A DNA stretch of 64,000 bases from Thalia democratica (Eukaryota): the NCBI GenBank assembly GCA_965202585.1, contig OZ241829.1:58652001-58716000 (forward strand). Direction: 5' to 3'. A program made the translations under genes and the position numbers. This document shows, in pieces, positions 1-20,260 of the stretch (positions are counted from its first letter, which is position 1; every line of letters begins with the position of its first letter). The notes under the pieces were generated by a model. It made no database searches. It worked only from the letters and a program-made list of their open reading frames with translations, and was not told the DNA's origin.

Positions 1-2720
1 CAAATCTATTGAAAATACGGCATGCTTGTAAATTTTTTGTTACTACCTCTCAAACATTGTTTATAATGGTTTGTAAATTAATTGTAGTCTCAATGTTAAT
101 TAGTTTTGAAAAGGAAAGTACATCAAACTCAAAAGTATTTAACTCCAGAAAATTAAATATTAAGCTTTTATAGTCTATTTATAAAAGACGTACTTCATCG
201 ATAAAAGAACATTCGGGTAAACTTTGTTTGAACTAATTCCAAATGTTTTTTTTAACATAAAGACCATGTTGGCGTGTTGTTTTCTAGTTTAGGATATTGT
301 TGTATACCAATAATTTTTTTTAATGACTATATCAGTAGGTTTTAAACTTTTTAAAGTTAAAAAAAATGTAGTAGACTAAGTTTAGCAAGTTTAAATAACA
401 TGGTGGTTCTTTTTTTGTTTTTTTTAATATTTTCATTATTTCAGATAAAGTTTGTGTTGTTTATTTTAAAGTCAGTATAGGTAGCACTATTTTTATGACT
501 AATTAGAACACGACATTTGCTAAAATTAAACTTATCTACAGACTTTTGAGAAACTTTGTTAGATTGACAAAACAGTTTTGTGACACCAGCAAAAAGGTTA
601 TTGTTTATGACAGGATCAAATTTTAAAGCTATATCATTTATACATGTTATAAATAAAATTGGCTAATACCCCCTTCTTGAGGCAATTTACTGTTAGAGAT
701 TCTAAAAATGTTTTACTAATCACTTATTTAAACTCTATTATAGAAACTCTACTTATAGAAACTCTTTTAATCAAATAACTGGACTATTATCAATTTTGAA
801 CTCGGATAATGTTTTTGTCAACTTGAAATTAGAAACAGTCGAAAGTTTTTACGATATCTGTATAAGTTAATTGACTTACTGCTCATAAAGACGCAAAATA
901 ATAATGCAAGACATCTAATAAATGAAAACAAGATGCTTGTTTTGGAAAATAATCAAATTTAGTATTTTTAATAAACAATCAAGTATTTTCTAAGAAATTA
1001 TATGCTCGAAAACCTGCAAAACCTACTTGTTAAAAATATTGGTTTGTAATTAGAAGGGTTTTGTGTTCTTCTTTTTGTGTAATGGTATAACATAAGAATT
1101 TATTTACTGGTTTGGTATAGAAGATAAGAAATAGTTAGTGATAAATAAAATAGGAATAATTAATTCATTATATATGAAGGAATATTTTTTAGTTTTTTAT
1201 TATTTTATCTCTTCTTTAAAAAACTTAAATTTATCACCGTTGCTTTTAAAGAAAATTTGCACTTCATGAGTTTTTTATAACAAATTTAACTTTTGGTCTT
1301 CATAACCCTTACTAAAATATTTTTGAAAAAACTTATTCAATAAAAAAGCTGTGTCAGAAAATGATGCAATTTTTGCTTATTTAAACAATGAAGGAAAAAA
1401 GAAACTGACTTAAGCTTTGTATTTACAAAATTTTTTTGTATCTTGAAAAAATAGTTTTTCTTGTTCTATGTTGATAGTTTCCACAGCTTTTTGATATTTA
1501 GTGGATTTTTTTATCATTTGCATGTTAGATCTAAGTTGATGTTTAGTTTTTATCAAATAAGTATTGGTTTATCTAACTTTTTTTGTTATTAAAGTTTTTT
1601 TTTTATTTTACCCATATGCTTTAATGAAAAATAACTCAACACTTATAAATAGCCGATTGCTATAATTAATAAATACATCAGTAGCTTTTTTATTCTGGAT
1701 TTTGTACAAGAATAATATTATATGTTTTTAAAAGTTAAATAAAAGTAAAAAATAGTTTTTATATTAATCAACAAAACTCTAAACTAAAATAAAGATACGG
1801 TTTTCTATTACAAATAATATTTTTGTCGCTTTATAAAGTAAAAAAAAAGCAGTTTTAGGACTAACTTATTCATTATAAGTTGTTCATAGACTATTCATTT
1901 TAATTAAGTTATGAACAAACACTTTTGTATACCATTTTTATCTTAACTAACAGTTAGCCTTTTCTAGCACTTGCGTTTTAGCAACCTCAATTTGAATTAT
2001 TAAAACTCAGTAACTTGTGTCATACGAGTTAAAATAAATACTTTATTACGATATAATTCAAATTGTAAATATTCTTCAAGTAAAGTAATTCTTGTTAAAA
2101 GTAATTATTCATGTTGTGGTAACCACAAGATTCAGCTAAATAAAAATTTAGTTAACATATAATAAAGTTTTAACTTTTAAAGTAAAGTTTTAAAGTTGCA
2201 GGAGATGGAATAAATTTCACTGAAAAAAAAATTGTCTGATTTAGAAAAAAAATGTTTATTACAAGTTTACTAATACGTTTTTCAATAAAAAAGTATTTTT
2301 GCAGCATTGTAAGTCAAAAGCTAAACTACGTCTCTAAAACTCTCTACATTAACTACTTCTATAATCTATAATATCTATATTAGTTTTCAGTCGGTTTAAA
2401 TAATGAAGATAAATAAAAATATGTATCAATTCACAAATATTTTGTAAACAAAAAATGAATTTAGTTTTGCTTAAATGAGCAACAAAAGACTAGTTTACAT
2501 TTTCAATTATGTAACTTTAAAGTTCTCTACAAATATGCGTATGAAATTCAAAAAAAAATTTGTTTAAATAAAGTCACAGTAATCAGCTAGAAGAAATACA
2601 AAGCAAAATTTAAATCAGGATTCAAGGAGCAGCATATTTACAATGAGCTCGCAAAAAAAGCAGCTTATTTACAACTAAAAAAGTAACATCTAATAAAAAA
2701 ACTATAACGCAAAAAAAAAA

Positions 2721-5700
2721 TCATTCTATCCATTTTTTTCTTGTTAGTTTTGGAGAAGATTTGATGTTTTCCAAACTCGTCACTTTTGCAGTATTCTAAA
2801 GAATATAATCATTAATTTAAAAGAAATATTACTTTAAAAGTAAATTAGCTTACATTGTAATTAATTGGTGGTGAAGTATTTAAATATTCTAGCAAGCTTT
2901 CAGGCCTCTTTTGAGTAGAAAGCGGGGATTTTTGGTTCAGTGATATTGGCGAATCAGATTGCTGGTAGATTCCTAACAACTTTGCCGAAGCTGGTTTAAT
3001 TAACTGAAATGAATTTAATTAATCGTTAGGTAAGTATCGCATATAAAAAATGTACAAAATTCAGGCTTTGCATGAATGAGGTATATAATATACAAGGTAG
3101 AAGAATAATATGTTTATAAGAACAAACTTACTTTTTCATTTGTAACAACATGAGATGTGGTGCTTTTTAACTCAGAGTTTTTACTTGAACTTTGCGTATT
3201 TTCAATAAACCTTACTTTAGGCTTCCTGTAAGAATAAACTAATTAGCTATTAAGTATTAGAAACCATAGGTTGTAGGCGTCTTGGTTTTTAAAGATTATT
3301 TTTATATTTTTAACTGTATGTGAAACACTAACATAGAGTCGCATACATCAAGAGGTAGTTTACTCAGTGCTGAAGTAAGGTTGGAATCTGTGACAGCTAA
3401 AAAAATATATATGTTTAAATTAAAAATTATAGAATCATGTAGAAATCAACATAAGAAACAGTACAACTAACAGTTAGAGCTAGACAGAGATGTAGAGCTT
3501 TTTAATGAAGATTTCAACGAGCTTTGGTTCGTCGACTCATTGTTTAAAGCTGAACTATCACCCGGTTGCTGGCCCAATACCTGTATTTTCAGTTTACTTT
3601 ATTTAAATATAAAACGCCTTAGTATGTTTTTAACTACAAATATTAACAGAAATTTATATTTAGTAATGTTTTTAATACAAGTATTAGTCTTCAAATTTTT
3701 GTAGCTACGTAAAAAGTCTTTACTTGTGTGAAGAACTATTGTAAAAACTAACAATGAATCTATAATTTGTTGTAGTTTAGTAGAATCTAAAAATGCTACT
3801 AGAAATAAGTATGACATGAGACAGTTTTTTAATCACGTAAATCGCCTTATTTGTTAAAAGTGTTACTTTTCAAAAGCAATAAAATATCACTTACAGCTTA
3901 AATAACAACAAATGAATTAGAAACAACATGATAGTTTAGCAGCTAATTTCTAACATACCCTCCTAACATAGTGATCTAGCATTTTTCTCCTTTCTTCCCC
4001 ATTGCTAGACAGCTGCATAGAATTGCTACTTTCGCAATTGCTACTTGATTTACTGTTGCTCACAGACGTTTCACTGCTTTGCCTGATATTTATTATCGTG
4101 TTATAGTTGGTCGATAAAGTTATATTAAAATTATTTTGTTGTAAAGAACTGCCTCTCTTAATTAAATCTAACAAAAAATAACTTTTAAACGTTTCTTCTT
4201 GTATAAATCATCTCTCCCAGTACTTTTACTACAAGTTTATTCGTTTTTACAGCAGTAGGCTAATAATGAATCAACAGTTAAGAAAAAGCTAGTAGATTTT
4301 TGAGACTTAAACTTATAAATGTATCAATAATTTAAGAAATTGGTCATTTATAACTAACACATAAAAACCTACCTTATATAAAACTTATAGAAATTGAATG
4401 TTTAACATGAATTCACAATAAAGGGTAAATTGCTTACTAACAGTTATAAATATTTGTGTGATATTAGATGAAAAAGTGTATTATAAATATTTAATGACAA
4501 ACTTATCATTTGACAAAGAAATGTGAGTTTCAGATGATTGAATCGCATTCTTGAACATTGAAGTAAAATCAGGCAAGTTTTTCAGTAAATCCTCATCTGT
4601 TTTTGTCGATTGATGCCCGTAAAAATTACTTATGTCTTTATTTTCAACAGGAGTTTGTTTTTCCGTTTGTGATTTAGTTGGGGTCAAGGGCAAAACTAGT
4701 GGAGTTGATTCTTGAAGCTCTAAATCAAACATATTTTTATTATTTCACACAAAATTACAAAAACTTGAATTTATAATACTAAATAACACACAACCTATAC
4801 TAACAGTACATGTGCTCAACTAAAAAACCTAATGGTTATATACTTTTAAAGTTATTAAAAAATATATATTTGATTTTTAAATACTAATTCTCAACAATTC
4901 AATTAAACTACAAAACTATTAATTTTCTAAAACTAAAAAAATCTCCTAAAATGTCTTTGTCTAGCTCAGCGATTCTTAATCTGGGGTAAATTTACACTTG
5001 AGGGTAAATTCATTTGTTTAAGGGGGTAAATTTTTTTATTACAAATTATGTAATTAAGGGTTTATGAATTGTCTTTTTAATTTATAAGTTATTATTTATT
5101 TTAATGTCTTTAAAGTTAAATAAACTCCTAAAATAGTACATTTTTTTATATATAATAAGCTTGAAGCTCAAAGCTTTTCCTCAAAATGACTTAATATTCT
5201 AACATTTGGGGGTTAATTTGGTAATTACCTTCCAAAAAGGGGTTAAACATGAAAAAAAGGATAAGAACTACTGGTCTAGCTTATCATTAAAACAAGTAAT
5301 TCTCAAAATGTTTTTAAGCTGTGCCCAGTAAATCACAATAAGTGAAACTGTATCAAGAAGTGTTATGTAAGTTCGTGATTTAAAGCAGTGCTTCTTAAAT
5401 GGGGTTCCGCGGAACCTTAGGGTTCCGCGAAGCCTTTCGAAATTTAAAAAAAAAATATGAAAAAAAAAAAACATAAATCATAAAACTTCAAAAAAAATGG
5501 AACACATAAAATGGAAACTATATATAATTATAGAATCCGTTGATCTACTTAGTGTGTATCTAGCGGTATGACTTTTCATGGGTATTCATTATTGATAGGT
5601 GTCCTAGTTGCGCAAATTTTTGCAAATTTTTTGAATTTCTATTTTTAGTGACGTTATGAAAATACTGGTATTATCACTAAAGCAAACAATGTAGGAGCAA

Positions 5701-8700
5701 CCAAAACAAATTCTAAATGTTTACGCAATAAAAATAAATAAAAAATCTTTATCATAAACTTATTTCTGGTATATTATATTGTTACAAATGCTGTAAAAAT
5801 GTTTAAAAAGGTGTCTATTAGCTTGATTTAAAAATCAAAATGTATAAAAGCTAAATGGATACATTGTTTTTAACATAGAGAAAATTTGGCCACAAAACAT
5901 CTTCCTTCTTGTTTACAAGAAGTTCTCTCATCGTCAATTAAAACTGTTAATTTTATAAAGAAAAGTGATACAAAGGCCAGATGTTTCAAAAACCTTTGTG
6001 AAAGTTTAGATGCTGACCATCTGCGACTTCTTTATCACAATGAAGTTCGCTGGCTTTCGAAGGGGCGGACACTGGTTCGTCTCGTTGAATTAAAAGAGCA
6101 GGTGTTCACCTTTCTTAAAGATGAAGGCTCAGAATTAGTGAAGTTCTTTGAAGATGATGTTTTTTTGGCCAGGCTAGCTTATCTCACCGATATTTTCAAA
6201 GAATTGAACGTTTTGAACTTAAGCATGCAAGGGAAGCAAAATTCCATTTTTGTCATGACAGACAAGATTGAGGCGTTTAAAATAGAATTAACTTTTGGAA
6301 GAAAAAGGTTAGCAATGGTAATTTTGCGATGTTTCACCGATTTGATGAGGCCCATGAAAAATTTATAGAATTCAACTTCTCTGACGAAATATACAACCAC
6401 CTTGATCTTTTGTCTGTAAAGTTTCAACATTATTTTCCTAAATATTTTCGCATCGAAAACTTATGGATTTTGAATCTTTTTATGTGTGATATTGCTTCAG
6501 AAGAAGTGAATCTTCCTACAGATACAGAAAACGAATTGCTGCAACTATCTGAAGATAGCAATTTAAAATTGAGTTTCAAAGGGAAGGAGCTATTAGATTT
6601 TTGGATATGTGCAATTTCAGAGTACCCCGTCTTAGCAAAGCGTGCAGTAAAATTTATTTTACCATTCACCACCACTTACCTTTACGAGTCCGGCTTTTCG
6701 CATGTAACAAACATTAAAACGAAGCAAAGGAACTGTATGCTGACTCCAACCTTATCTGCCTGTCTCCGTCTCAGTCTATCCAAAATCCAGCCGCGCATTG
6801 TTAGTAAGAGATAAGTCAGGGTTTCCCAAAGTGGGCGATATCGCTGCTCTATATAGTTTCAATTCAAAAAGTCAATTTTATACTAAAAAACCCAAAAATA
6901 GATTGTTGTAATACTTTAAATCAGTGCTTCTGAACCTTTTTCTAGTGGCGGAACCCTTTTCCAAAGTTCAACTTTTCCGCGGAACCCCTAATTTTAATTT
7001 TACATAAAATGTTTAATATAGTATTTCCTGCAAAAAACTAAAGAATTTCAGTGAAAAACGAATTTTTTAGCAAAACTATATCATTGTTAGAAATCATACA
7101 AATTGTAATAGTATTAAGCCGAGTCAAAACTGAAGTGCGCCAGAGGCAATAGGTATTTTATGATTCTATAATAAATAAACAAAAACAAGCATGATTAATC
7201 AAACATAAAAATCTTTCCTTGCATATTAAAAACAAAATGAGAGCTACAAACAATAACATTATGAGTATGAACCTAATCGAATTCACAGACTACTGTAATA
7301 AACGGGTAAGATGCCTAACAAAAAATAAGTAAAAAACATTTAGTGCAAAACTTGAACTTATCTCTTACTAACAATGCGCGGCTGGATTTTGGATAGACTG
7401 AGACGGAGACAGGCAGATAAGGTTGGAGTCAGCATACAGTTCCTTTGCTTCGTTTTAATGTTTGTTACATGCGAAAAGCCGGGCTCGCAAAGGTAAGTGG
7501 TGGTGAATGGTAAAATAAATTTTACTGCACGCTTTGCTAAGACGGGGTACTCTGAAATTGCACATATCCAAAAATCTAATAGCTCCTTCCCTTTGAAACT
7601 CAATTTTAAATTGCTATCTTCAGATAGTTGCAGCAATTCGTTTTCTGTATCTGTAGGAAGATTCACTTCTTCTGAAGCAATATCACACATAAAAAGATTC
7701 AAAATCCATAAGTTTTCGATGCGAAAATATTTAGGAAAATAATGTTGAAACTTTACAGACAAAAGATCAAGGTGGTTGTATATTTCGTCAGAGAAGTTGA
7801 ATTCTATAAATTTTTCATGGGCCTCATCAAATCGGTGAAACATCGCAAAATTACCATTGCTAACCTTTTTCTTCCAAAAGTTAATTCTATTTTAAACGCC
7901 TCAATCTTGTCTGTCATGACAAAAATGGAATTTTGCTTCCCTTGCATGCTTAAGTTCAAAACGTTCAATTCTTTGAAAATATCGGTGAGATAAGCTAGCC
8001 TGGCCAAAAAAACATCATCTTCAAAGAACTTCACTAATTCTGAGCCTTCATCTTTAAGAAAGGTGAACACCTGCTCTTTTAATTCAACGAGACGAACCAG
8101 TGTCCGCCCCTTCGAAAGCCAGCGAACTTCATTGTGATAAAGAAGTCGCAGATGGTCAGCATCTAAACTTTCACAAAGGTTTTTGAAACATCTGGCCTTT
8201 GTATCACTTTTCTTTATAAAATTAACAGTTTTAATTGACGATGAGAGAACTTCTTGTAAACAAGAAGGAAGATGTTTTGTGGCCAAATTTTCTCTATGTT
8301 AAAAACAATGTATCCATTTAGCTTTTATACATTTTGATTTTTAAATCAAGCTAATAGACACCTTTTTAAACATTTTTACAGCATTTGTAACAATATAATA
8401 TACCAGAAATAAGTTTATGATAAAGATTTTTTATTTATTTTTATTGCGTAAACATTTAGAATTTGTTTTGGTTGCTCCTACATTGTTTGCTTTAGTGATA
8501 ATACCAGTATTTTCATAACGTCACTAAAAATAGAAATTCAAAAAATTTGCAAAAATTTGCGCAACTAGGACACCTATCAATAATGAATACCCATGAAAAG
8601 TCATACCGCTAGATACACACTAAGTAGATCAACGGATTCTATAATTATATATAGTTTCCATTTTATGTGTTCCATTTTTTTTGAAGTTTTATGATTTATG

Positions 8701-11700
8701 TTTTTTTTTTTCATATTTCTTTTTTAAATTTCGAAAGGCTTCGCGGAACCCCTGAGAGGCGTCTCGGAACCCTAAGGTTCCGCGGAACCCCATTTCAGAA
8801 GCACTGAATTATAGAGTAATAAGTTATTTTTCAAACTTTTTCTTTTCTGATTATAAATTCTGAGCTAAGAACACTTACTGTGTACAGGTAGGTATTTTGA
8901 GAAAAAATTACTTAGACTAATCACCCATGTCTGTAAGTACAATTTTTAAATCTTAACATTTTGTATGCACATTACACATAAAACTTTATTTACTATTTTC
9001 TATCCATATCAAATAATATCTTTTTTAAAAGTAGACCTGCTGTACTTGTTCTTTGTTTGTAAAAGAAGTAACACCTTTATAACTTGAACTCGTTTTAAAA
9101 AAAGTTGAGCTTCAACGTAAGGATTCTTAACTTCTATATGTATATTTAGTTTTTGTTTAAACTATGTATTGACATAACAATTTTTAATCATACAAAAGCT
9201 AATATAGTAACTAACAAAAGCTAAACTTCAATTGTATTGACTTACCGGAAAGTTTATTGTCTAGGTTAGTCAAAATACTCCTGGTTTTTTCATTAATCAA
9301 ACTGTCCACCGAGGTATAATGACGATTTTGACTTTTTTCTAACTTAACACTTTTTACGGAATATTTGTTTACTATAGAATCTACATTAGACTCATCTAAA
9401 TTTCTTGCTGGTGCATTCACAAAGGGTCTTCAAAGTTGAAATTAAAATGTTATTTTAGATAAACACGTCACATAAAACAGCTTATAATATTGTATATGTA
9501 TTTAGTGAACGAAAACTAAAAATAAGCTGTTTAACTGAATTAAATTACTAACTGTTGCAGCAAAGAAACATTTTCTTTGTTTTTAGGCGGTGACTCTTTT
9601 TGAGGTATTCTTATCATTACATGCTTTGTACTCGAATAACTCTGTTAAGTTTTGTTTATATTTATACCTAAATAATACTTTAATCTTTATAATTAATTGT
9701 GTCAGTTATATTTTTAAGAGTTAAAATTAACTGAAACAAAAACAAACTCTGGATACATCTGGACTTCCATCTTCAGTAAGTGAACTATCTCCCATTGCCT
9801 ATAAAATAAATGTTTATTATAGTTTTTAATTGTACCATATAAAATAAAATAAAAATTAAACAAGTAAACAACAAACGATTAACACTTATTAAAGTAAAAT
9901 GATGACAAAACTTTTATATTAACTAAAGCAGTTGTTCAAAAATTTTAACTTATATTTTACTTTATCTTACTAGAAAAATTAATTTATTGTACATAAAAGT
10001 TATGCTTTGATAATAAATTTATCTAGTCGGTTATGATTACTAAAGCTTTTTACTTCAAAGGTAGATAACATCATATTAAAGTAGTAAACATATTATTTTT
10101 TATTAAACATGTATTTTATACCTGAATAGTTTGGCTATAATGTGATTGAAGTAAGCTTTGAAATTTAGCTTTCATCTCATCTTTAATTATGCAAGTTTTT
10201 TGTTCTAGTCTGGAAAGTTGAATATTCTTTTATTAAATTACATAAAACTCATGATAGTTCATAGAAAAAAGTTATAGTAAGAAAAACAGTGTTAGCTTAA
10301 TTTTAAAACATATTAGTTGATTTTATACATTTTATTCTATGCACATATACTTTGATAACTTATAAGCTGAATACAGTTTAAAGGATATAATTACGAGAAT
10401 GCATTGTACCTAAGTGATAGAATCAAAAACTGGATAGTAGTACCAGTTAGTTTACAGTATCGTATCTTCAAAGAGTCAAATCAGGAAGTCTCGTAAATGC
10501 AAAATCGAACCGAACTAATTGTATTATACTAAGTATTAAGATGAATATTCTAGTTATTTATACTTTTAATATTACAAAACTTTTTTATAAGCTTAAATTT
10601 TTAACTAATGTCATGATGTCGTACTTTTGTACATACTTTTTTTGATAGGAGACTTCTATTTGATGGGTGGCGTTATTGAAGCCTATTTGCTGTTTGTTAA
10701 GATTGTCTTTGTGATTACCTAATAGATTTTCCAGCTCTTTTTTGTGAGATTCGATCAATTCTAAAACCTGTTAGCACCAATGTTTTAATAAAGTTTAGTT
10801 TACCTTAACGTTGAGTATTATAATCAATTTTTTAAACTGTATCAAAGTATTTCATGTTGTTTTCGAAATTAATAAAGTTAGTCAAAAATTACTATTGTTT
10901 TGTAATTTAAATAAGTCTTTAGACATTTATAGTTTTTATTTCGTGATTTCAACACTAAAACTTTTATATCAAGTTCAGCTAGTTTATAAGTTATACTAAC
11001 TTGTTTTTTATTATTTTCAATTATTTGAACTTCCCTTTCATCTGACACAAGTTTTGCTTTTTCTAACTCTTCAAGAACCTTTGTTTGTATACGTAAAAAA
11101 AAATTAAAAAGCAATATTATTTGTGATCTTATAAATAAAAAAAGCAATAAAACTCATTTAATTATTTAAACAATATAACAAAGAAAAATAAGTTCCCAAA
11201 TGAAACTAAGCTAAATATATTTCATTAACAAACTTTTTTATTGGCTTCAATTTCCATTTCATCTTGGAGTTTGGCCATAGCACTTTCGTGAGCTTTCATA
11301 TCCTCTTCCCTTTGAATTTGAATTTCTTCAACTTTATGCTGCAACTTACGCATCTTGTCTTCATTCTCATCCGCTTCCCTCGAATGTCTGCGGTTTTCAA
11401 TCTCTAACACCTCCACTCTTTCGCGCTCCAACTTTAATTTTTCCTGTTTAAAAATTGTCATAAAATATAGGAAGTTAAAGAAAAACATAAAACCAAACTA
11501 CTTTTTAACTTTGACAACTGTATACTTGAGTTTAAAAAATACCAACTCTGTATTCATCCACTTCCTTTTCGTGCTTTTCATTTTTTTCATTGATCATTTT
11601 GTTCCAATGCATTTCTTCTTTTACAAAAATTTTGCCTTGTTTCTGATCAAACAAACAGTTTAATTCATTTAGTGTATTTTTAAACTAGAAAGCTGTTATA

Positions 11701-14700
11701 AAAGTTAGTTATTCGACAAAATCAATTTTTTGAAAGATTGTATTAACATTTAGTAAGAAGTACGAAGTAAAAATAATTATACTACAACAAACAACTATAA
11801 TTACTTTATATTATGATTGTTAAATAAAGTAAGAAATTGTTTTTATATGTAACTAAAAAAATCAGCATACTTCAATGTCAAGGTGAGCATCAGCAAGCAA
11901 TTTCTTTAAGTTTTCAACATCTTCTTTTAAAGCTTCTTGCTCCTTCTCCAGTTTTTTAATATATTTATTTTTCGAATCTATTGACTTATGAATATGTGCT
12001 GCTTTATTCTAAAATTATAAAATAGCTATCATTAAATAAACTCTATAATACAACTTTTTGAATGAAAACTAAATAATTAAACCATAATTTATTGAAAATT
12101 CTAACAACTAATTTACTTTTTAAATTTTTGAGATTCTATTAAAACTTTACAACCAATGCAACAAATACTTTATAGAATTTTATAAATTATCCTAAGCATA
12201 AATATAAACAAAATCATTTTTGATCTTTTTTTGTAGTTTATAATGTCTAACAAAGCTGACTGTCTTATGATAACATATTGAAAAATATTGCATTATAGAA
12301 ATAAATTATTTGAAAGTTTCTAAATCAAAATGCATTTTACTTTTAAATTCTAATATCAAATCATTTTTTTATTAATGCGCATGGTGATTTTTTTATTTCA
12401 AATAAAACTTTATTCACTTGCATTGGCTGTCTTGTTGACTTAGCATCTATTAATTTCAATTTCATTTGATCCTTTATTAGTTTATTCATAATTATTGTCA
12501 ACTCTTTTTCCCTTGAACACATTTCCTTTAATTTTAAGATTTTTATTTTTTATTTTGAAGTTTAATAGCAACTGTAAACAAATTGTAAAAAATATCTATG
12601 CTAATTTACTTAAAGCAACCATAAGTAGTGTAAATTATTAAAGTAACTGCATATCAAAGAAAAACATTAAAGTGATTACACTTGTTTAAATTAAATATGT
12701 TTGATTACATTTTCCTAGTAAATAGATAGATGCATTTTAATGTATAAAGTTATAATTAGCACTTAATTTAATATATGATTTAAACTTGAACAAATTCTAT
12801 AAAAAAACTAAAATACGAAACATAATAATCTAATATAAGTTAAGTTGTTCGTTTCAAAATTAAAAGAAACGTTTTGTAATGTTTTAAAGCTCATGTACAG
12901 CTCTTAATAAGTATAAACAGTATTATTGTATTTACATCATTAATTTTTGAAATTTCAACATCCGTTGCCTCTTTTTCAGACTTTAAAAGAATAATATTCT
13001 CCACTAAGTTTTTCTCATGTGATTTCCAATTTCCTAACATTTGCATCAACATCTAAAAACAAGTTATAGTTTAAAACTTAATTAATTACTATGTGTCTCA
13101 AAACAATCTTTTTTTATAAACAAATTACTATACTTATAAAACAGCAATTCTAATTAATGATCTACCAGGTCCACAAATAAAGATACAGCTAGATCCACTT
13201 CTTTTTCAAAATAAAATAAATAACTTGTATTTTAAACTAAAAACTAATTGATAAAAAATGTTGATATTAGCAAAAAACAAATCAAACAAGCTTGACTACG
13301 CCTGAGTTTTTCAAAAGAGTTCAAACTAGCCAGAGTAGATTGAGTGTGTGGCAGCTCTGATATTTTTTTTTTTAATAAAAATACAGCCTACTTCTGTTTA
13401 ATATATGTACTTACATACCTTGTCTAATTGTTCGATCATAGTATCTTTTTTAGCCTCTACAGAATGGGCAACTGCCAGTTCTTGTTTTGTTTCCAAAATT
13501 TTATTTTGAAGAGAATGTATTTCTTGTTCACAATGCTTGCGTCTAAACCTATTTATAATTTTTATCTAGAAATCAGTTTTATTAATACAACTAAATAATA
13601 AAAAACCTTTCTTTTTCTAGAGTCTCATTCAAAATAGTAATTTCACTAGTAGATGTTACTAATTGATCTTTATTACTATTTGCACAGTGATTTGATTGAT
13701 TAGTGAGTTGTTTTGCTTGTTTAAGCATATCAAACATTTTTACAGCCATATCAGTATCAGTTTCAAGTAAGTTTTGCTTTTCATACCTGTGTTATAAATA
13801 TACTAAGATAAACATTTCACACTAAGCTAGTTTTTACTAGTAAGATAAAAACTTAAGTTTGTAAAATATAAAAAGAAAATAATAACAAAAATCTGGTGCA
13901 ATAACCTTAAACACTTATTAACTCGTGTACATTTAAAATTAGTAAACCATTTACTTGAGTTTAAAATTAGGCTAACAAAAAACACAAAATCGAAACTAAA
14001 TTAGCTCAATATTTCCAATTGTGTAATAAAAACTTTTCTGATACTTATCTATTACAAAAACCTATATTCTATAGATGTTAAAAATTATTAACATCCACTT
14101 TTTGATGATAAGTGTACATCAAAATTTATTTTGGTATAAATTTAAGTATTCAAAAAATAAAAATATCAAACAATACTAAGACCTTAGTTGGTTGACATCA
14201 GTGTCAATGTTTTCAATTCCTAACATGCTCTCTGTTAAACATGTATTAAAAATTATTCAATATAACAAGCTACTATTAACATTATAAAAACATTTGTTAA
14301 ACAAAAATTTTGCACTTGATTGGTTTTACTTTGAAATTACACAATGTAACCTAATTGCATCTTAAGCAGTTGTGACTTTACTTATTGAGTAAATAACTAT
14401 TCATATAGTTTTTCACTAAGAACCTTGAATTAAATGTAGTATATAAGCTTACCGTCTACATTAGAGGGATTCAAATATGTTTTAAGATGGTTCCTAAATT
14501 TTTTCATTTCAGCTATTGGTGGTGAGTCAACTATTTTTTTAGGTTTATGATCATTGTCTTTTTTTGGCTTTGTGTGTTTTTCCTTTTGTTGATTAAAATT
14601 GATTTTCTGTTAAAAGTAGCTTTATTTACTGCTATAGTGTGGCTCTTATATTTTTGACATATAAAAAATAGTAAATGTATCTAAATATTCTTTATTTACT

Positions 14701-17514
14701 TAAACAAATAAATTTAATTTCTTACACTTTTTTCTTTAGTAATTTTCTTGAAAATATTCCGTTTTTCCATAGAAAGAGGCTTAGTGACTTTAGCAGCAGA
14801 AGATTTTGTCTGTTTAATTTTTTTAGGTGATTTTCTATTTTTAATGACTTCTTTAATTTTGCTTTTGTTGTTTGTCATTTTTTTAAGAGCAATCTGACTG
14901 TCTTCAGTATAAATTTCTTTTTCAACATGGTTAATAAATTCATCTAAGTCTGAGGGCAGCACAAATTCATTATTACTTGTAACTCCATTAGTAGGTAACT
15001 CTGGACGACTGGTATCATAACTTTGTATACTACTTTGCAGTTTTTTTGCTGCAAAATTATTTTTTGTTATAAAAGCTTTTTATTCTAAATACCTTATTTC
15101 AAAAAAAGTTTTAAAAAATGGTATTGGAAAATTAAAATATAGTATAAATTTTATAAGCTAGAATGCCTTGACTTTTTTAGAACATGTTTTTATCCAACTC
15201 TGTTTTCATTATTTTTCTTCATAAATTTAAAAACTTTATCAAACCTTGCTTAGTTACTATTACAAGTAAACTTTTAAAATAAATCTATTACTTAATAATC
15301 TTATGTGCTTAAGACTTTTCCTTTACTGTGCCAAGATTTTCATGAGTCAGAAAAACAGTAATTTAAAGCCTTTTGAGGGGTAATTTTTTTAAATAACTTG
15401 ATCAAAACTTGTAAAGTTTTAACCAAGTCTGTTAATTTATCTGTGTTAATTTTTTTAACAAAGTGAAACAAATTTCAGTTAGATAAAGAAAAGTACTGTG
15501 AAAACTGTTGTTATCATTGTAAATTTAACTTGTTTTGTTAGGAACTGTGTTAACACATTATTAGCTATTAAATTTTAATATTAGTATCTTTATCTTTAGC
15601 TACTCAAAAACTAAAAAAAAAAGAGTTAAAACTACTTCAATCTCTTGTATTAGACTAAAACTAATTCTATAAAGAGTCAATAAAAAATAAGAAAATATTT
15701 CATAAAGTAAAGAATTCTTATGACATATACAACACTTATTTGATTATGCATGGTTTGACAAAATGTAATTTTATACTCATAACTTTAATATTATTATACT
15801 TTATTATACTACAAAGAAAATTTAAAGCAAACAGTTGTTGTTTATATTACTAAAAAATTGGTAAAGCATTACTTTTAAACAAAAAATTTAAAATCAAGAG
15901 AGATTTTGTGAATTTTTATGATTTTTAACTATATCCAGAGAAATTCAATATTTTTTCACAAAATTACAAACACCCAAGAAAATCAGGTGTAGTGAAACCT
16001 TGTATTAAACTTGATAGAACTTACTTTGAAACTATTTTTCATTTTTATGCAATATTTTATTATATTCTTTACAGAAACAAGACAAAACTATATACATAAA
16101 TTACAAAATTATATTGTATATAATGGTTAAAATAACAAAATAAACAAATACCAGTTTTAGAAGCTTGAAGACTTTCAGTAGCTAAGTCTTCATAATCATC
16201 AATGATACAATTATTAAAACAACCAATGGAAGTTGAAAGTGTTCTGGAAAATTGTTGGTTATATATAGTGGCATCTCGCTGAAGTTGCACACTTTCAGGG
16301 CTTGAATCTTGCAAGTCAACAAAAGATATACAACTTGTTTTACTGGGAGACATGCTAGCTTTCATTTCCATTTCTCTTTTTAAACTTGCTGTTAAGGATT
16401 CTTGTAGAAGCTTAATAGATTCATTAGCACTTTCATTCAGTTGGTTTGTTATGTTGTTATTATCATTAGAACTTATACTGCAAATGTTTTAGTTACATTA
16501 AGTGTTATAATAGACTTTATATTTTATTTTTTACAAGTTGCAAACACAAAATACAGTAATTACCTCGGATGATGTTGCAACAATATCAAGATGATATTTT
16601 ATTATATTTGCTTTTTTAACCATATTTTTAATCTAAAAACTTATACTTTATAAATATATATAAACAAAACTAAACTTATTTATCATAAACTAATAAAACT
16701 TACCAGTTTAATCACTTTTATTTTACAATATAAAGCAATTATATAATTACAACAATTTATACTGATAACGATATTATAAAATAAAATTATCAAATATTTT
16801 AGCTTATAATAAATAAATTTAGTTCTTGCTATGTATTTAAATAGCTCGTTTTAAACAAAGTATCTTTTTAGATTAAACACTTTAGGCTTAAAAGATTGAT
16901 TTTTAGCCTAGAATTATGGTTAAAAAATACTTCAACTTCAATATAATTTCAGGTTAATACTAGTGCGACTTCATCCTAGGTAATTACCCAAAATACTACA
17001 CTTTTGCAATAAATAATCAGGATTGTCACTTTTTTATCAAAACTCAGAACATTTGGCTAATAATTGCTGGAGTAAGTATATTGATTTATAGTAACAAAAA
17101 TTAAACTATTTTTGTAAAAAAAAACTTTTGAAATTATTTAAAATAATCAATTTAGCTTAATCTTATTATTAATCATAGTAAAAAAGGACAAATGACAATG
17201 AGAATATTTTTTAAGTTGTGACATAAGATATATTTTTAAAGTAAACTAATTCTAAATCAATAAAAAAATAAAACAATTTTGCTTTAAATTTAAATAAAAT
17301 ATTACAATTATTTTAAGTAAAAGTTTAGAAACAACATTTTCAAATGTTGTATAAAGAGGAAGAAAAATTTTTCAAACTGATTTTAAAACACATAAACCAT
17401 TAAATACCTTATAAAACTTTTGTTTGTACAGTTGTCACCTTCTTGTTTAGAGCTTTTGTCCTCAGTTAGGTCAGAAACATTTAAGCTATCATTCATGACA
17501 GATGTGCTATCCAT
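2721..17514 (-). CDS. CNTROB: Centrobin (daughter-centriole coiled-coil protein), multi-exon, roughly 1100 aa
   Basis: Phase-consistent GT-AG exons read manually on the minus strand: 17514-17408, 16477-16152, 15048-14726, 14606-14453, 14231-14183, 13786-13607, 13548-13419, 13052-12936, 12008-11871, 11684-11547, 11443-11234, 11078-11001, 10767-10637, 10209-10122, 9798-9748, 9641-9553, 9427-9246, 4719-4503. Further exons lie at about 4167-3959, 3580-3472, about 3396-3345, 3225-3132, 3003-2854 and 2795-2721 (stop TGA); junction phases around 4.5-4.2 kb and 3.4-3.2 kb are unresolved. Exon 7 encodes RRKHCEQEIHSLQNKILETKQELAVAHSVEAKKDTMIEQLDK, closely matching the recalled vertebrate centrobin segment RRKHCERHIQSLQ...LAVAVAADRKKDTMIEQLDK. 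Exon 14 (KFQSLLQSHY) resembles centrobin RLQAMLQAHW. Confidence 0.85.
4967..5273. mobile_element. hAT-type MITE (307 bp) in centrobin intron
   Basis: Imperfect TIRs (CAGCGATTCTTAAT / reverse complement CAGTAGTTCTTATC), perfect 8-bp TSD GTCTAGCT at 4959-4966 and 5274-5281, and subterminal GGGGTAAA motifs. Confidence 0.85.
5386..6816 (+). mobile_element. hAT (Buster/Charlie-like) defective element, 5' part; left arm of inverted duplication
   Basis: TIR CAGTGCTTCTTAA at 5386 with subterminal GGGTTCCG/CGGAACC repeats. Near-identical reverse complement of 7356-8806. Truncated at 6816 by the terminus of a different hAT. Confidence 0.9.
5856..6814 (+). pseudogene. Disrupted Buster/ZBED5/FAM200-like hAT transposase, C-terminal half
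   Basis: WIHCF*HRE (CxxH motif with a TAA stop at 5871-5873), HNEVRWLSKG, YLTDIF and a C-terminal dimerisation-like region (LPFTTTYLYESGFS...R). A one-base frameshift near 6295 splits it into the 160-aa and 161-aa ORFs. The N-terminal half is absent. Confidence 0.85.
6817..6844 (+). mobile_element. 28-bp terminal stub of a second hAT family
   Basis: CAGGGTTTCCCAAAGTGGGCGATATCGC resembles the termini at 32708 and 55064. It is preceded by AGATAAGT (central TA, Buster-type target). No matching second end is seen. Confidence 0.6.
6922..8806 (-). mobile_element. hAT (Buster/Charlie-like) defective element, 1885 bp, both TIRs present; includes the right arm 7356-8806
   Basis: 13-bp identical TIRs CAGTGCTTCTGAA at 6922 and at 8806 (reverse complement). 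The flanks CTTTAAAT and AATTATAG do not match each other. Confidence 0.9.
7358..8316 (-). pseudogene. Second copy of the disrupted hAT transposase
   Basis: Same stop (8299-8301) and same frameshift as the left copy. The translations differ only at YESG versus CEPG. Confidence 0.85.
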
Positions 17515-18989
17515 TTAGAATTGTGCAACAAATTTTTATTCCTAAGATGTATTATTAGTCAATTTTTACTATTATTATTAATCTAGTTTTTTTTTAATTT
17601 CTTTAAAATTAAAATTAAAACCTTTTTGTGAATTTCTTATGTGATAAGAAAAAAAAAGTGAGATAATTTAAAAAAACTAAATACAGTTTATACCCAAGAA
17701 CTACTTTTGTACAATATATAAAATCCAAGTAAACTTCATAAGTTCGATATAATCTTCTTATTGAAGGAAAGCTAAAGGAAAATTTTGAGTTTTTGTTGTG
17801 ACTTATTAATTATTCTCTACACTAATCATTTAACATAGGTGTTAGCATTAAATTTTTTATTTTAACAAATCTAAAAAAAATTAAAAATTCTGATAGAAAA
17901 AGATAGCAGTGCGGAGTATAATATTAGTCTAATGAACTTAACAAAGTAATTTTTTATATACTTAATAAATTCTATCATTTGATGGTTTTGTAAAGAATAA
18001 AAATTGCAAAGGAATGCTACTTTCAACTGTTATTAAACTGTTACAGCTATTTGGAAAATTCAAAACATAAATTACCCTAATTGAAATATTGTTAGAACCG
18101 CCAGTTTTCTTTTTGTTAATTGCATAACATAATGAAATGTAAGTACATCAACGACATTTGCATATCTAAACAGAAAAAAAAATACTTTTTACGATATTAA
18201 ATTCTTTAGTATTAAACTTTTTTAACAATATATTTTTAAAGTTATAATAAATTTCATGAAAAATGCTTTAAAAAAATTAGTTTTACTTTATAATAGACTA
18301 CCACTTTTTGGTATCTATTAATATATTCTTAAAAGTTAAGTACTTATTTTCTTTAAATTTTTGATAAGAAAAGAAACTTTGTTTAAGTAATTTAATCTAA
18401 TTTAAAATTACAACAATTTAAGTGTCTTTACTTTTTTATTTTACTTCCTTTTAGTAATTAAAAAAGTTTTATCACTGTTTCTGACTTTAATTTTTAATTA
18501 ATATTTAATTAGTACTCATAAAAATGTACATAAGAACTTATTTCAATAAAATAGTGTTATCTATTTTAGTTGTTACCAATCTAGATAGATTTGATTGTAA
18601 CTGTAATATGATAAGTTTTATATTTTTTAGCAGATTTATAAGTTATATTTACATTTTAAATTAAAAAACCCAACAAAAAGTAAAACACATTTTTCAAACT
18701 ATTCTCTTACATCAATCTTGAACTAATTTGTAGCATTAAGCCAATATTACATTGTTAAACTATATAAATGGAACATTTATTAAGTAATTTTAAAAGGTTG
18801 TAAATTTAATAAATTTTCGGTGACTTATTTTAAAGTGTTTTTAATATATATAAGCTCATTTTTTGACCAATTTATTATTATTTATTTTTTTAATATCGTT
18901 AAAATTTAGAGCAAGTTTTTAAATTTTTATACATATTAACCAATTTTCACTTAACCTTTATCATTTATTAGTTTGATAACTATTTTTTG

Positions 18990-20260
18990 TGGCATTACAC
19001 AATTTCTATTCAAATTCAAATAAAATTACGTTTGATAGTTTTATTTCTGATTATTTTGAATAATTCTGCTTAATTAATTTAATCCTGGAGAATTTTAAAT
19101 CTAAATAAATTTCAACCAATGAAATTTTAACCTGTTTAATTTTCGTCTAAATTTATTTCATTCTAATCACTTACAATCCAAATTATCTCCAACCTGGTAA
19201 CTCTAAATAAAGTCATTTTTGTTTAAAATTATTTACCATTCGGTTATTTTTCATCCAAAATTTTCAATACGTCAATTCCCTTCCCACCCAAATTAATCTT
19301 AATCTGTTAAATTTAAACCTGACTAATTCGATGACCGCTAGGATGCTTTTAAAATCGGCGACCTTTAAATTTTTAGCTAATTTTTTTTTTTACCTTGTGA
19401 AATATCGCAAAAACCCTGTTTGCAAATTTTCAGCTGATTTGAGGTAGCCAATATAAAGACTAATTTATATTTTCTTAAAACAACCCCAATACAAACTTTA
19501 TGGGACCGAAAAAATTAAACCTTTGAATCTTTAGTTAATTTTATTTTTACATTAGGAAAATTATCTTAAAAACACATTGTGCACAATTTAAGACGATTTA
19601 AAGAAAGTTTTATGTGGCATTTCTTGTTATTAGGCAAAAAAAACTTGAAATTCAAGGAAACTTAAAAAAATGAATAAAAATAACATAAAATCAAGAATTG
19701 CCTCAATAATACTTTATTTAAATCTTTCGATTTTTTTGGTCCCATATAGTTTGCATTGGTGGTGTTTTCAGAAAATGTAAATTAACCTCTATATTCGCTA
19801 CTTCAAAGCAGCTTAAAATTTGCACATAAAGTTTTTGCGATATTTCCCAAGGTTAAAAAAATTTCCTGCTGTAAATTCAAAGGTCGCCGATTTTATAAGC
19901 ACCCTAATGACTATACATATTATTCACATTTGTATCGGTTACAATTCGATTAATTTTTTTATCATCAAATATTTTCTATCATTTAAAAATTACTAAAATT
20001 TTCAAACAATTATCTAACTAAATAAGCTTTATATTAATTATTATTTAATAAATACAAATCTTTTTTGATCATTTGTTCAAATCATATTCGATTCTAAATT
20101 TTTTTTATCCAAGTTGTATCATGCAAATCAAGTTATACCTAATTCATTCTTATCTGAAAAACTCTATCCAAACTATAATCTATCAAATATTTTCATATTT
20201 AGGTTTATTTTCAACCGATAAGAGTTAGTTTAACTAAATCTTATTGTCGAACAAAGTAGA
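18990..20260. repeat. Degenerate short-period (about 15 bp) repeat tract interrupted by a MITE
   Basis: Loosely periodic units such as TTCATCCAAAATTTT and TCTATCAAATATTTT on both sides of 19339-19906. Periodicity was judged by eye only. Confidence 0.4.
19339..19906. mobile_element. Non-autonomous DNA transposon (MITE) with about 175-bp TIRs
   Basis: Left TAGGATGCTTTTAAAATCGGCGACCTTTAAATT matches the reverse complement of the right end (TAGGGTGCTTATAAAATCGGCGACCTTTGAATT), and similarity continues to ATGGGACC. TA at both tips; superfamily unresolved. Confidence 0.8.

Follow-up and report, generated by a model that had tools for sequence, protein, structure and literature searches.

Exchanged target-site duplications in a closely linked inverted pair of hAT elements in Thalia democratica

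Introduction

Among the described systems that most resemble the locus reported here is the Ds pair of rice OsRLG5-161, in which inverted copies of a hAT element lie about 1 kb apart, having arisen from the local re-insertion of one element (PMC3239180, PMC3429523). The segment between these transposons was inverted by homologous recombination in 33 of 300 plants, and deletions were the commonest heritable outcome (PMC3239180, PMC3429523). Inverted duplications of 5'-terminal transposon sequence are likewise found in maize, in the Ac/fAc composite insertions, Ac killer 1 and Mu killer, where they arise by aberrant transposition of hAT (or Mutator) elements; in each of them the duplication takes in the terminal repeat together with a portion of the transposase gene, and at the killer loci double-stranded RNA and siRNAs are made and the family is silenced (10.1101/2020.01.07.897926; PMC13635294). 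The palindromes of sex chromosomes have near-identical arms that are kept alike by conversion, and an intrachromatid crossover between such arms inverts the interior without other damage (PMC3723533, PMC8327919). A further likeness, by analogy only, is with the bacterial and phage invertible segments of the Hin, Gin and Fim type, in which DNA bounded by inverted repeats has two possible orientations.

The locus analysed here lies in a window of 64,000 nucleotides from Thalia democratica (assembly GCA_965202585.1, contig OZ241829.1, positions 58,652,001 to 58,716,000) and consists of an inverted structure that spans 3.4 kb. It differs from each of these systems in definite respects. The rice case is transgenic, with an active transposase and an inversion that was directly observed, whereas the Thalia locus is natural, belongs to an AT-rich genome and has its inversion deduced from sequence; in addition, one of its copies, unlike those of the rice pair, was shortened by a nested insertion and a deletion. 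Maize composite insertions are enclosed by one perfect 8-bp duplication, whereas the outer flanks of the Thalia structure (5378-5385 and 8807-8814) agree at only six of eight positions. The arms of sex-chromosome palindromes measure tens to hundreds of kilobases and bear genes, whereas those of Thalia are 1.4 kb of dead transposon. The Hin, Gin and Fim switches, finally, have short specific sites, an adjacent dedicated site-specific recombinase and a regulated promoter or gene, while the Thalia locus has neither a recombinase nor a regulated gene, and any flipping would need general homologous recombination. The locus represents an already familiar side product of hAT activity and recombination rather than a novel type of genetic switch.

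Anatomy of the Inverted Arms

Near-identical inverted arms around a 539-bp spacer had been noticed in the sequence-only reading of this DNA, and alignment of 5386-6816 (1431 bp, forward strand) with 7356-8806 (1451 bp, reverse strand) bears this out: the two are reverse complements of each other with an identity of 99.7%, separated by the 539 bp of 6817-7355. The left arm is a hAT copy cut short 2 bp beyond the stop codon of a transposase remnant; at its other end it retains the A-end terminal repeat. The right arm, together with 6922-7355, makes up what is, as assembled, a complete internally deleted element of 1885 bp (6922-8806). The latter stretch, hereafter the B part, is 434 bp of 3' non-coding sequence on the reverse strand that includes the B-end terminal repeat (at 6922); a single B part occurs at the locus, and family copies run unbroken through the 7355/7356 junction.

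The arms differ by four substitutions (pairs 5396/8796, 5452/8719, 6684/7488 and 6689/7483), one 21-bp indel, present at 8752-8772 on the right and missing from the left arm, and one 1-bp indel in a run of A. Polarised by comparison with 16 family copies, most of the derived changes fall on the left: a G to T change at 5396 in the terminal repeat, the loss of the 21 subterminal bp, and the substitutions at 5452 and 6684. All six differences fall within 77 bp of the outer end or 133 bp of the inner end of the arms, leaving the central 1221 bp without any; such clustering has a P of about 5e-5 on the assumption that all six are independent, and its support falls to roughly P 0.02 if the four outer changes represent a single repair event. 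Differences at the arm ends around an identical centre are the pattern expected of arm-to-arm recombination or conversion.

The hAT Element and Its Family

The element is a non-autonomous 1885-bp member of the hAT superfamily. It has both family termini, with a 13-nt terminal repeat starting CAGTG that is common to both ends, and the subterminal regions of its A and B ends differ. A second genomic copy, C6:14208118-14209988, matches it end to end at 97% and carries a perfect 8-bp duplication. The transposase remnant of the left arm (5886-6814, forward strand) is split into two overlapping frames, 5886-6368 and 6329-6814, and has its mirror image in the right arm (7358-8286, reverse strand). 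The hAT C-terminal dimerisation domain (Pfam PF05699) lies in the second frame, with scores of 24.0 and 22.0 bits for the two arms (curated cut-off 21.4), while the Pfam search of the first frame returned no match; the likeness of that first frame to a FAM200/GTF2IRD2-like domain (score 0.96) is a lead only. The classification as non-autonomous follows from the extent of this remnant, which amounts to only about 310 residues across the two frames, has lost the N-terminal half and has a first frame without Pfam match; the copy at the locus contains no intact RNase-H-like DDE catalytic core.

The family has about 1000 copies in the genome, where open frames reach 548 aa. The longest of the copies examined, L027, is degraded, copies are 7-10% diverged and rich in stop codons, and the family as a whole looks old and mostly degraded. 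The internal-deletion form common to both arms is rare, with one other copy in the genome. The sequence-only reading had proposed that the target-site duplications of the family be determined elsewhere in the genome, and the rule emerges from 28 sampled copies, among which 23 have a perfect 8-bp duplication: the target consensus is nTnTAnAn, with TA always at positions 4-5, mostly T at position 2 and mostly A at position 7.

A Nested Second Transposon in the Spacer

The length of the spacer was given correctly in that earlier reading, which overlooked that the point of truncation of the left copy is the exact terminus of a second transposon, so that the spacer contains more than host DNA and the end of the element. 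This 28-bp remnant of a left terminus (6817-6844, forward strand) begins exactly where the arm homology ends, and it is identical at 28 of 28 positions to copies of a family, TE2, whose flank differs in each copy. The first 21 nt of the terminus have 4371 genomic matches at no more than two mismatches (control, 0), and full copies measure 2.8-3.3 kb and have 8-bp duplications; TE2 is a very abundant hAT-like family, distinct from that of the arms. The octamer immediately before the remnant, AGATAAGT (6809-6816, forward strand), is native sequence of the arm element and was the target of the nested TE2; its central TA is shared by every duplication of the two families. Because arm homology stops precisely at the TE2 terminus, one of the copies appears to have been shortened by a nested insertion and then by a deletion.

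Between this remnant and the octamer adjoining the B end lies a unique stretch of 68-69 bp (6845-6913, reverse strand), for which the genome search gave no other match past the first 30 query bases. We infer that it is host DNA which once followed the right-hand copy of the first target octamer and is now inverted. Outside the structure, the right flank past 8814 is unique in the genome and the left flank matches only an unrelated repeat; the assembly contains no alternative haplotig or paralogous empty site. The ORFs of at least 90 aa within positions 1-20000 are limited to the transposase remnants and two low-complexity frames, with no site-specific recombinase among them.

Exchanged Target-Site Octamers

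Beyond the A end of the left copy lies the octamer ATTTAAAG (t1, 5378-5385, forward strand), which fits nTnTAnAn, while the B end is adjoined by a second copy of t1 in reverse complement, CTTTAAAT (6914-6921, reverse strand). Beyond the A end of the right copy is a different octamer, AATTATAG (t2, 8807-8814, forward strand), presumably the surviving half of the duplication from a second insertion. The sequence-only reading had held that 6914-6921 is the exact reverse complement of 5378-5385, and so it is, at eight of eight positions, whereas the two flanks of the complete copy as assembled, 6914-6921 and 8807-8814, agree at four. Agreement at all eight positions between two independent family targets has a chance of about 0.003, compared with about 0.15 for agreement at six or more. 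The inner six bases of t1 are palindromic, and direct comparison of 5378-5385 with 6914-6921, without flipping, also gives six of eight; the orientation call from the octamer alone consequently rests on its two outer bases, together with the facing of the B end.

Given the complete match after a flip, its low probability by chance and the near-constant perfection of duplications in the family, it is very probable that the DNA between the arms was inverted in the past. An inversion of the spacer, with arm recombination or aberrant transposition as its cause, had been proposed before, and both the restoration of a perfect duplication by the flip (8/8, against 4/8 as assembled) and the confinement of all arm differences to the arm ends speak for it; the two mechanisms cannot be told apart from the sequence.

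Evolutionary History of the Locus

How did the two halves of one duplication come to lie beside different copies and in opposite orientation? The answer that we favour, and to which we assign an even chance, is that the locus is a fixed scar, built stepwise by the formation of an inverted pair, a nested insertion, a deletion and a crossover flip. The 1885-bp non-autonomous element would have inserted at ATTTAAAG, duplicating the octamer, after which a second copy of the same element would have entered AATTATAG, a short distance downstream and in opposite orientation with the B ends facing, through the local re-insertion that is usual for hAT elements during replication. A TE2 member would then have inserted into one copy at AGATAAGT, immediately past the transposase stop codon, and a deletion, probably by imprecise excision or failed gap repair, would have left 28 bp of TE2 and removed the 434-bp B part of the host copy, the inner octamer and some of the DNA between the copies. 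At some time after the second insertion, an intrachromatid crossover in the 1.4-kb inverted arms would have flipped the intervening DNA, with the consequence that the octamer at the sole surviving B end reads as the reverse complement of its partner, while gene conversion would have gone on exchanging sequence between the arms. The crossover, the extent of the lost DNA and the order of these events are our reconstruction; the anatomy of the arms, the duplication rule of the family, the nested terminus and the relations of the octamers were directly observed. There is precedent for the flip: among regenerated rice plants with a pair of inverted Ds elements separated by 1.1 kb, homologous recombination had turned round the DNA between the transposons in 11% (PMC3239180), and simple inversion is the product of an intrachromatid crossover in palindromes (PMC3723533). 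This history requires five events, and the inner octamer expected from the second insertion is no longer there for comparison.

One event fewer is needed if a single aberrant transposition made the assembled arrangement directly, with no later crossover, which we regard as possible but rather doubtful. Once a single element at t1 had been replicated, its B end on one sister chromatid and its A end on the other would have been cut and would have entered the nearby t2 together, a reaction called sister-chromatid transposition in the Ac/Ds literature and hybrid element insertion for P elements. The outcome would be a pair of inverted copies whose intervening segment was inverted from the start, with the nested insertion and the deletion coming afterwards. 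On paper the product reads left flank, t1, element, inverted t2, inverted host DNA, inverted t1, inverted element, t2 and right flank, which fits the arm anatomy and the octamers once the centre-left part is deleted, and sister-chromatid transposition of Ac/Ds with resulting inverted duplications is documented (10.1101/2020.01.07.897926; PMC3239180). However, the documented cases joined the ends of two separate nearby elements instead of sister copies of one, the diagnostic inner t2 is deleted at the locus, leaving nothing specific for this route, and the clustered arm differences indicate a later arm-to-arm recombination that would suffice by itself to flip the spacer. The final sequence predicted by crossover and by sister-chromatid transposition is identical. 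An artefact of assembly, in which the inverted repeat was misresolved and the true spacer has the opposite orientation, with the left copy complete and the right one truncated, seems unlikely: the clean duplication does belong to the flipped form, and each junction is surrounded by more than 120 bp in which the two orientations do not differ, so that only molecules longer than about 2 kb separate them, but by usual practice a 3.4-kb structure is spanned by any modern long read and a chromosome-sized contig suggests a long-read assembly. Very improbable is coincidence, that is, two independent insertions with unrelated octamers whose duplications decayed or never formed. Partial matches are indeed common among AT-rich targets with a fixed central TA, as the chance of six or more agreements shows, but a match at all eight positions is not, in the assembled sequence no duplication flanks the complete copy, in contrast to the great majority of its sampled relatives, and the near-identical arms have the same rare deletion form.

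The locus could instead be a working element, either a segment still flipping at an appreciable rate or a source of hairpin RNA, although we find this improbable. Inverted Ds pairs 1.1 kb apart often flip (PMC3239180), and each Thalia arm contains, in inverted orientation, the 5' terminal repeat and part of the transposase gene, which is the architecture of the maize killer loci. If transcription began at the element's own 5' end and ran across the spacer into the opposite arm, the product would be a 1.4-kb double-stranded RNA, and the palindrome would then be a natural killer locus silencing the roughly 1000 family copies through small RNAs, a reading that we hold to be slightly less probable still; a spacer flip that was still ongoing might change the arm reached by read-through. 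Were this true, the locus would be a non-plant equivalent of the Mu killer and Ac killer loci of maize, generated via the same aberrant hAT transposition. Against a working element, neither a recombinase gene nor any other long ORF lies nearby, and in a family that looks so old there is possibly nothing left to silence.

Two further arrangements were considered and rejected. Movement of the whole A-to-A palindrome as a single macrotransposon is contradicted by the outer flanks, which agree at only six of eight positions (chance about 0.15) while the arms are 99.7% alike. Duplication by sister-chromatid transposition of TE2 itself would have duplicated or inverted everything up to TE2 and left two TE2 copies, and no arm bounded by a terminus of the first family is expected from it on paper.

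Significance and Other Inverted Pairs

The locus constitutes a clean, datable natural example of the evolution of a closely linked inverted hAT pair, in which local re-insertion, nested insertion, deletion of the centre, arm-to-arm conversion and inversion of the intervening DNA are on display, all of them stages already known experimentally from plant Ac/Ds. Exchanged target-site duplications can be used to detect small past inversions in assemblies, and they carry a warning for annotation, in that an element that looks complete yet lacks a duplication may turn out to be one half of a recombined pair. By itself the locus opens no new question; it would gain in interest only if the hairpin were expressed or the orientation polymorphic.

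Convergent A ends at C2:14362117/14364641 were considered as a second example, but they belong to a pair of 195-bp MITEs that are independent of each other and are each flanked by a separate duplication. A second close inverted pair of the same hAT family does occur at L059, with the B ends facing and with deletions in the centre, indicating that local inverted re-insertion recurs in the genome of Thalia democratica.

Anatomy of the inverted pair

The window is AT-rich (G+C ~25%); the assembly from which it comes totals 802 Mb, and the contig that holds it is the size of a chromosome. The left arm of the structure (5386-6816, 1431 bp) and its right arm (7356-8806, 1451 bp) are inverted copies of each other around a spacer of 539 bp (6817-7355), and in global alignment they differ by four substitutions, one 21-bp indel (8752-8772, absent in the left arm) and a 1-bp indel in an A-run. 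Both element termini are present in 6922-8806, the complete copy as assembled, yet its flanking octamers, CTTTAAAT (6914-6921) and AATTATAG (8807-8814), agree at only 4/8 positions; the octamer preceding the left arm, ATTTAAAG (5378-5385), is the reverse complement of CTTTAAAT. Alignment and octamer comparison thus reproduce the inverted arms, the spacer and the octamer relationship that the sequence-only reading had described. A search of the genome assembly for a second haplotype of the locus found none. At 4950-5285 of the window, the left flank is part of another dispersed repeat, whose end is separated from the hAT insertion site by ~100 bp; of 993 candidate copies of this repeat, at least 40 were scored, with identities of 74-77%.

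That the elements belong to the hAT superfamily is shown by the length and consensus of their target duplications, their terminal repeats and the hAT C-terminal dimerisation domain, which scores above the Pfam cut-off in the second reading frame of each arm. In the ESM Atlas, the first frame is like the FAM200/GTF2IRD2-like domain of Charlie-type hAT transposases, a similarity to be taken as a lead only. Because the catalytic core is missing from the copy at this locus, that copy is non-autonomous. If we call the two termini the A end and the B end, the genome has ~1000 A-type termini of this family; most copies are ~2.3 kb long and 7-10% diverged, and the 1885-bp form, without ~470 bp present in those copies, is confined to this locus and a single site on a different chromosome (97% identity). 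A perfect 8-bp duplication flanks 23 of 28 sampled copies, always with a central TA and with the classical hAT consensus nTnTAnAn.

A nested transposon at the truncation point

The position at which the arm homology ends is not random: the terminal repeat of a second, hAT-like family starts at 6817, right after a native octamer, AGATAAGT, a terminus that the sequence-only reading had missed. With ≤2 mismatches allowed, the first 21 nt of this family have 4371 genomic matches and the reversed control has 0; full copies of the family, such as those at two other loci of the genome (L056, 76-2834; L058, 39-3379), measure 2.8-3.3 kb and are flanked by 8-bp duplications. At 28/28 positions the local 28 nt (6817-6844) are identical to these copies, and the flanks outside the copies all differ. 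Since this terminus lies exactly at the truncation point, the seemingly truncated copy was shortened by nested insertion and then deletion. The second family is reduced here to the 28 nt, followed by 68 bp unique in the genome, the inverted octamer and the B end; besides nearly the whole intruder, the deletion would have removed DNA alongside it and, on that side, the B part of 434 bp. The second family is very abundant (at least 4371 left termini), and the terminal repeat at its left end is followed at once by a perfect palindrome of 14 bp; the local remnant breaks off within this palindrome.

Origin of the probable inversion

How did the complete copy acquire discordant flanks? Three first-family termini are present, and the octamer next to each is intact and conforms to the target consensus. 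Turning the B side round makes the octamer of the only B end identical to that of the left A end, so these two termini entered together as a single element; the octamer of the right A end differs and therefore assigns that end to a second insertion. The spacer inversion previously proposed is supported by this comparison, the octamers agreeing at 8/8 positions once turned round versus 4/8 as assembled: from the position frequencies of the sampled duplications, a chance agreement of two unrelated targets has P ~0.003 at 8/8 and P ~0.15 at ≥6/8. Misassembly of the 3.4-kb structure is unlikely.

The history would start most simply from two closely linked copies in opposite orientation whose B ends face each other, as local re-insertion of a hAT element during replication is expected to produce; in rice, such a local inverted pair arose from a single Ds at 1% frequency (PMC3429523). 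A crossover between the inverted arms would then invert the intervening DNA, as in the crossover-type inversion seen in 33/300 plants for a rice Ds pair 1.1 kb apart (PMC3239180). Alternatively, a one-step reaction joining one end from each sister chromatid may have produced the locus, and this route, worked through on paper, arranges the parts in the same order. Either route would be compatible with the nested insertion and deletion, and because both end in the same sequence, the sequence by itself cannot choose between them.

All six arm differences lie ≤77 bp from the outer end or ≤133 bp from the inner end, leaving 1221 bp (5463-6683) identical between the arms; an identical gap this long has P ~5e-5, assuming six independent and uniformly placed changes. 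Such clustering would be expected if conversion homogenises the arm interior. The arms of sex-chromosome palindromes undergo conversion, and resolution as a crossover inverts the DNA between them (PMC3723533). However, a single repair event at the terminus could account for the four outer changes, and support for arm conversion would then be much weaker. Polarised against 16 relatives, the left arm holds most derived states, including a terminal-repeat change and the 21-bp deletion, an excess that does not separate the two inversion routes.

The locus works like the rice inverted Ds pair and has an architecture similar to that of the maize loci Ac killer and Mu killer. It lacks a perfect outer duplication, the one testable mark of the maize-type composite insertion. 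As for the invertible segment suggested earlier, the locus shows no hallmark of a programmed switch: neither a recombinase nor short recombination sites nor a regulated gene is present. The locus is a natural new instance of an already known kind of rearrangement.

Related copies elsewhere in the genome

Another locus, L059 (G000:C1:68262500-68266800), contains at 753-3373 an unusual inverted first-family pair with B ends facing. Three identically oriented occurrences of the octamer CTCTAGAT are found there: one precedes the A end of a 2.0-kb copy that has lost the last 40 bp of its B end, and the other two bracket a 555-bp internal-deletion derivative in the opposite orientation, one ahead of its B end and one behind its A end. 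The arms (508 bp) are 96% alike, each being only ~89% like other family copies. This arrangement points to an element that re-inserted within its own target duplication, and to later deletions in the centre; local inverted hAT pairs and their decay therefore recur in this genome.

Convergent A ends on contig C2 were rejected as a further inverted pair: they belong to two independent ~195-bp MITE derivatives of the family (L060, G000:C2:14361000-14366000, at 1118-1313 and 3479-3671), in opposite orientation and 2.2 kb apart, each with its own perfect 8-bp duplication. First-family copies with near-identical match coordinates and scores, ~140-240 kb apart, form pairs on C8 (30692638-30694163 and 30834082-30835607) and C1 (102826781-102829336 and 103064885-103067422) of G000, probably inside segmental duplications. 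The unplaced contig C400 (23161-24964) has the same first-family copy, with the same target octamer, as C8:43320419-43322222, and is probably a retained haplotig of this chromosome-8 site.
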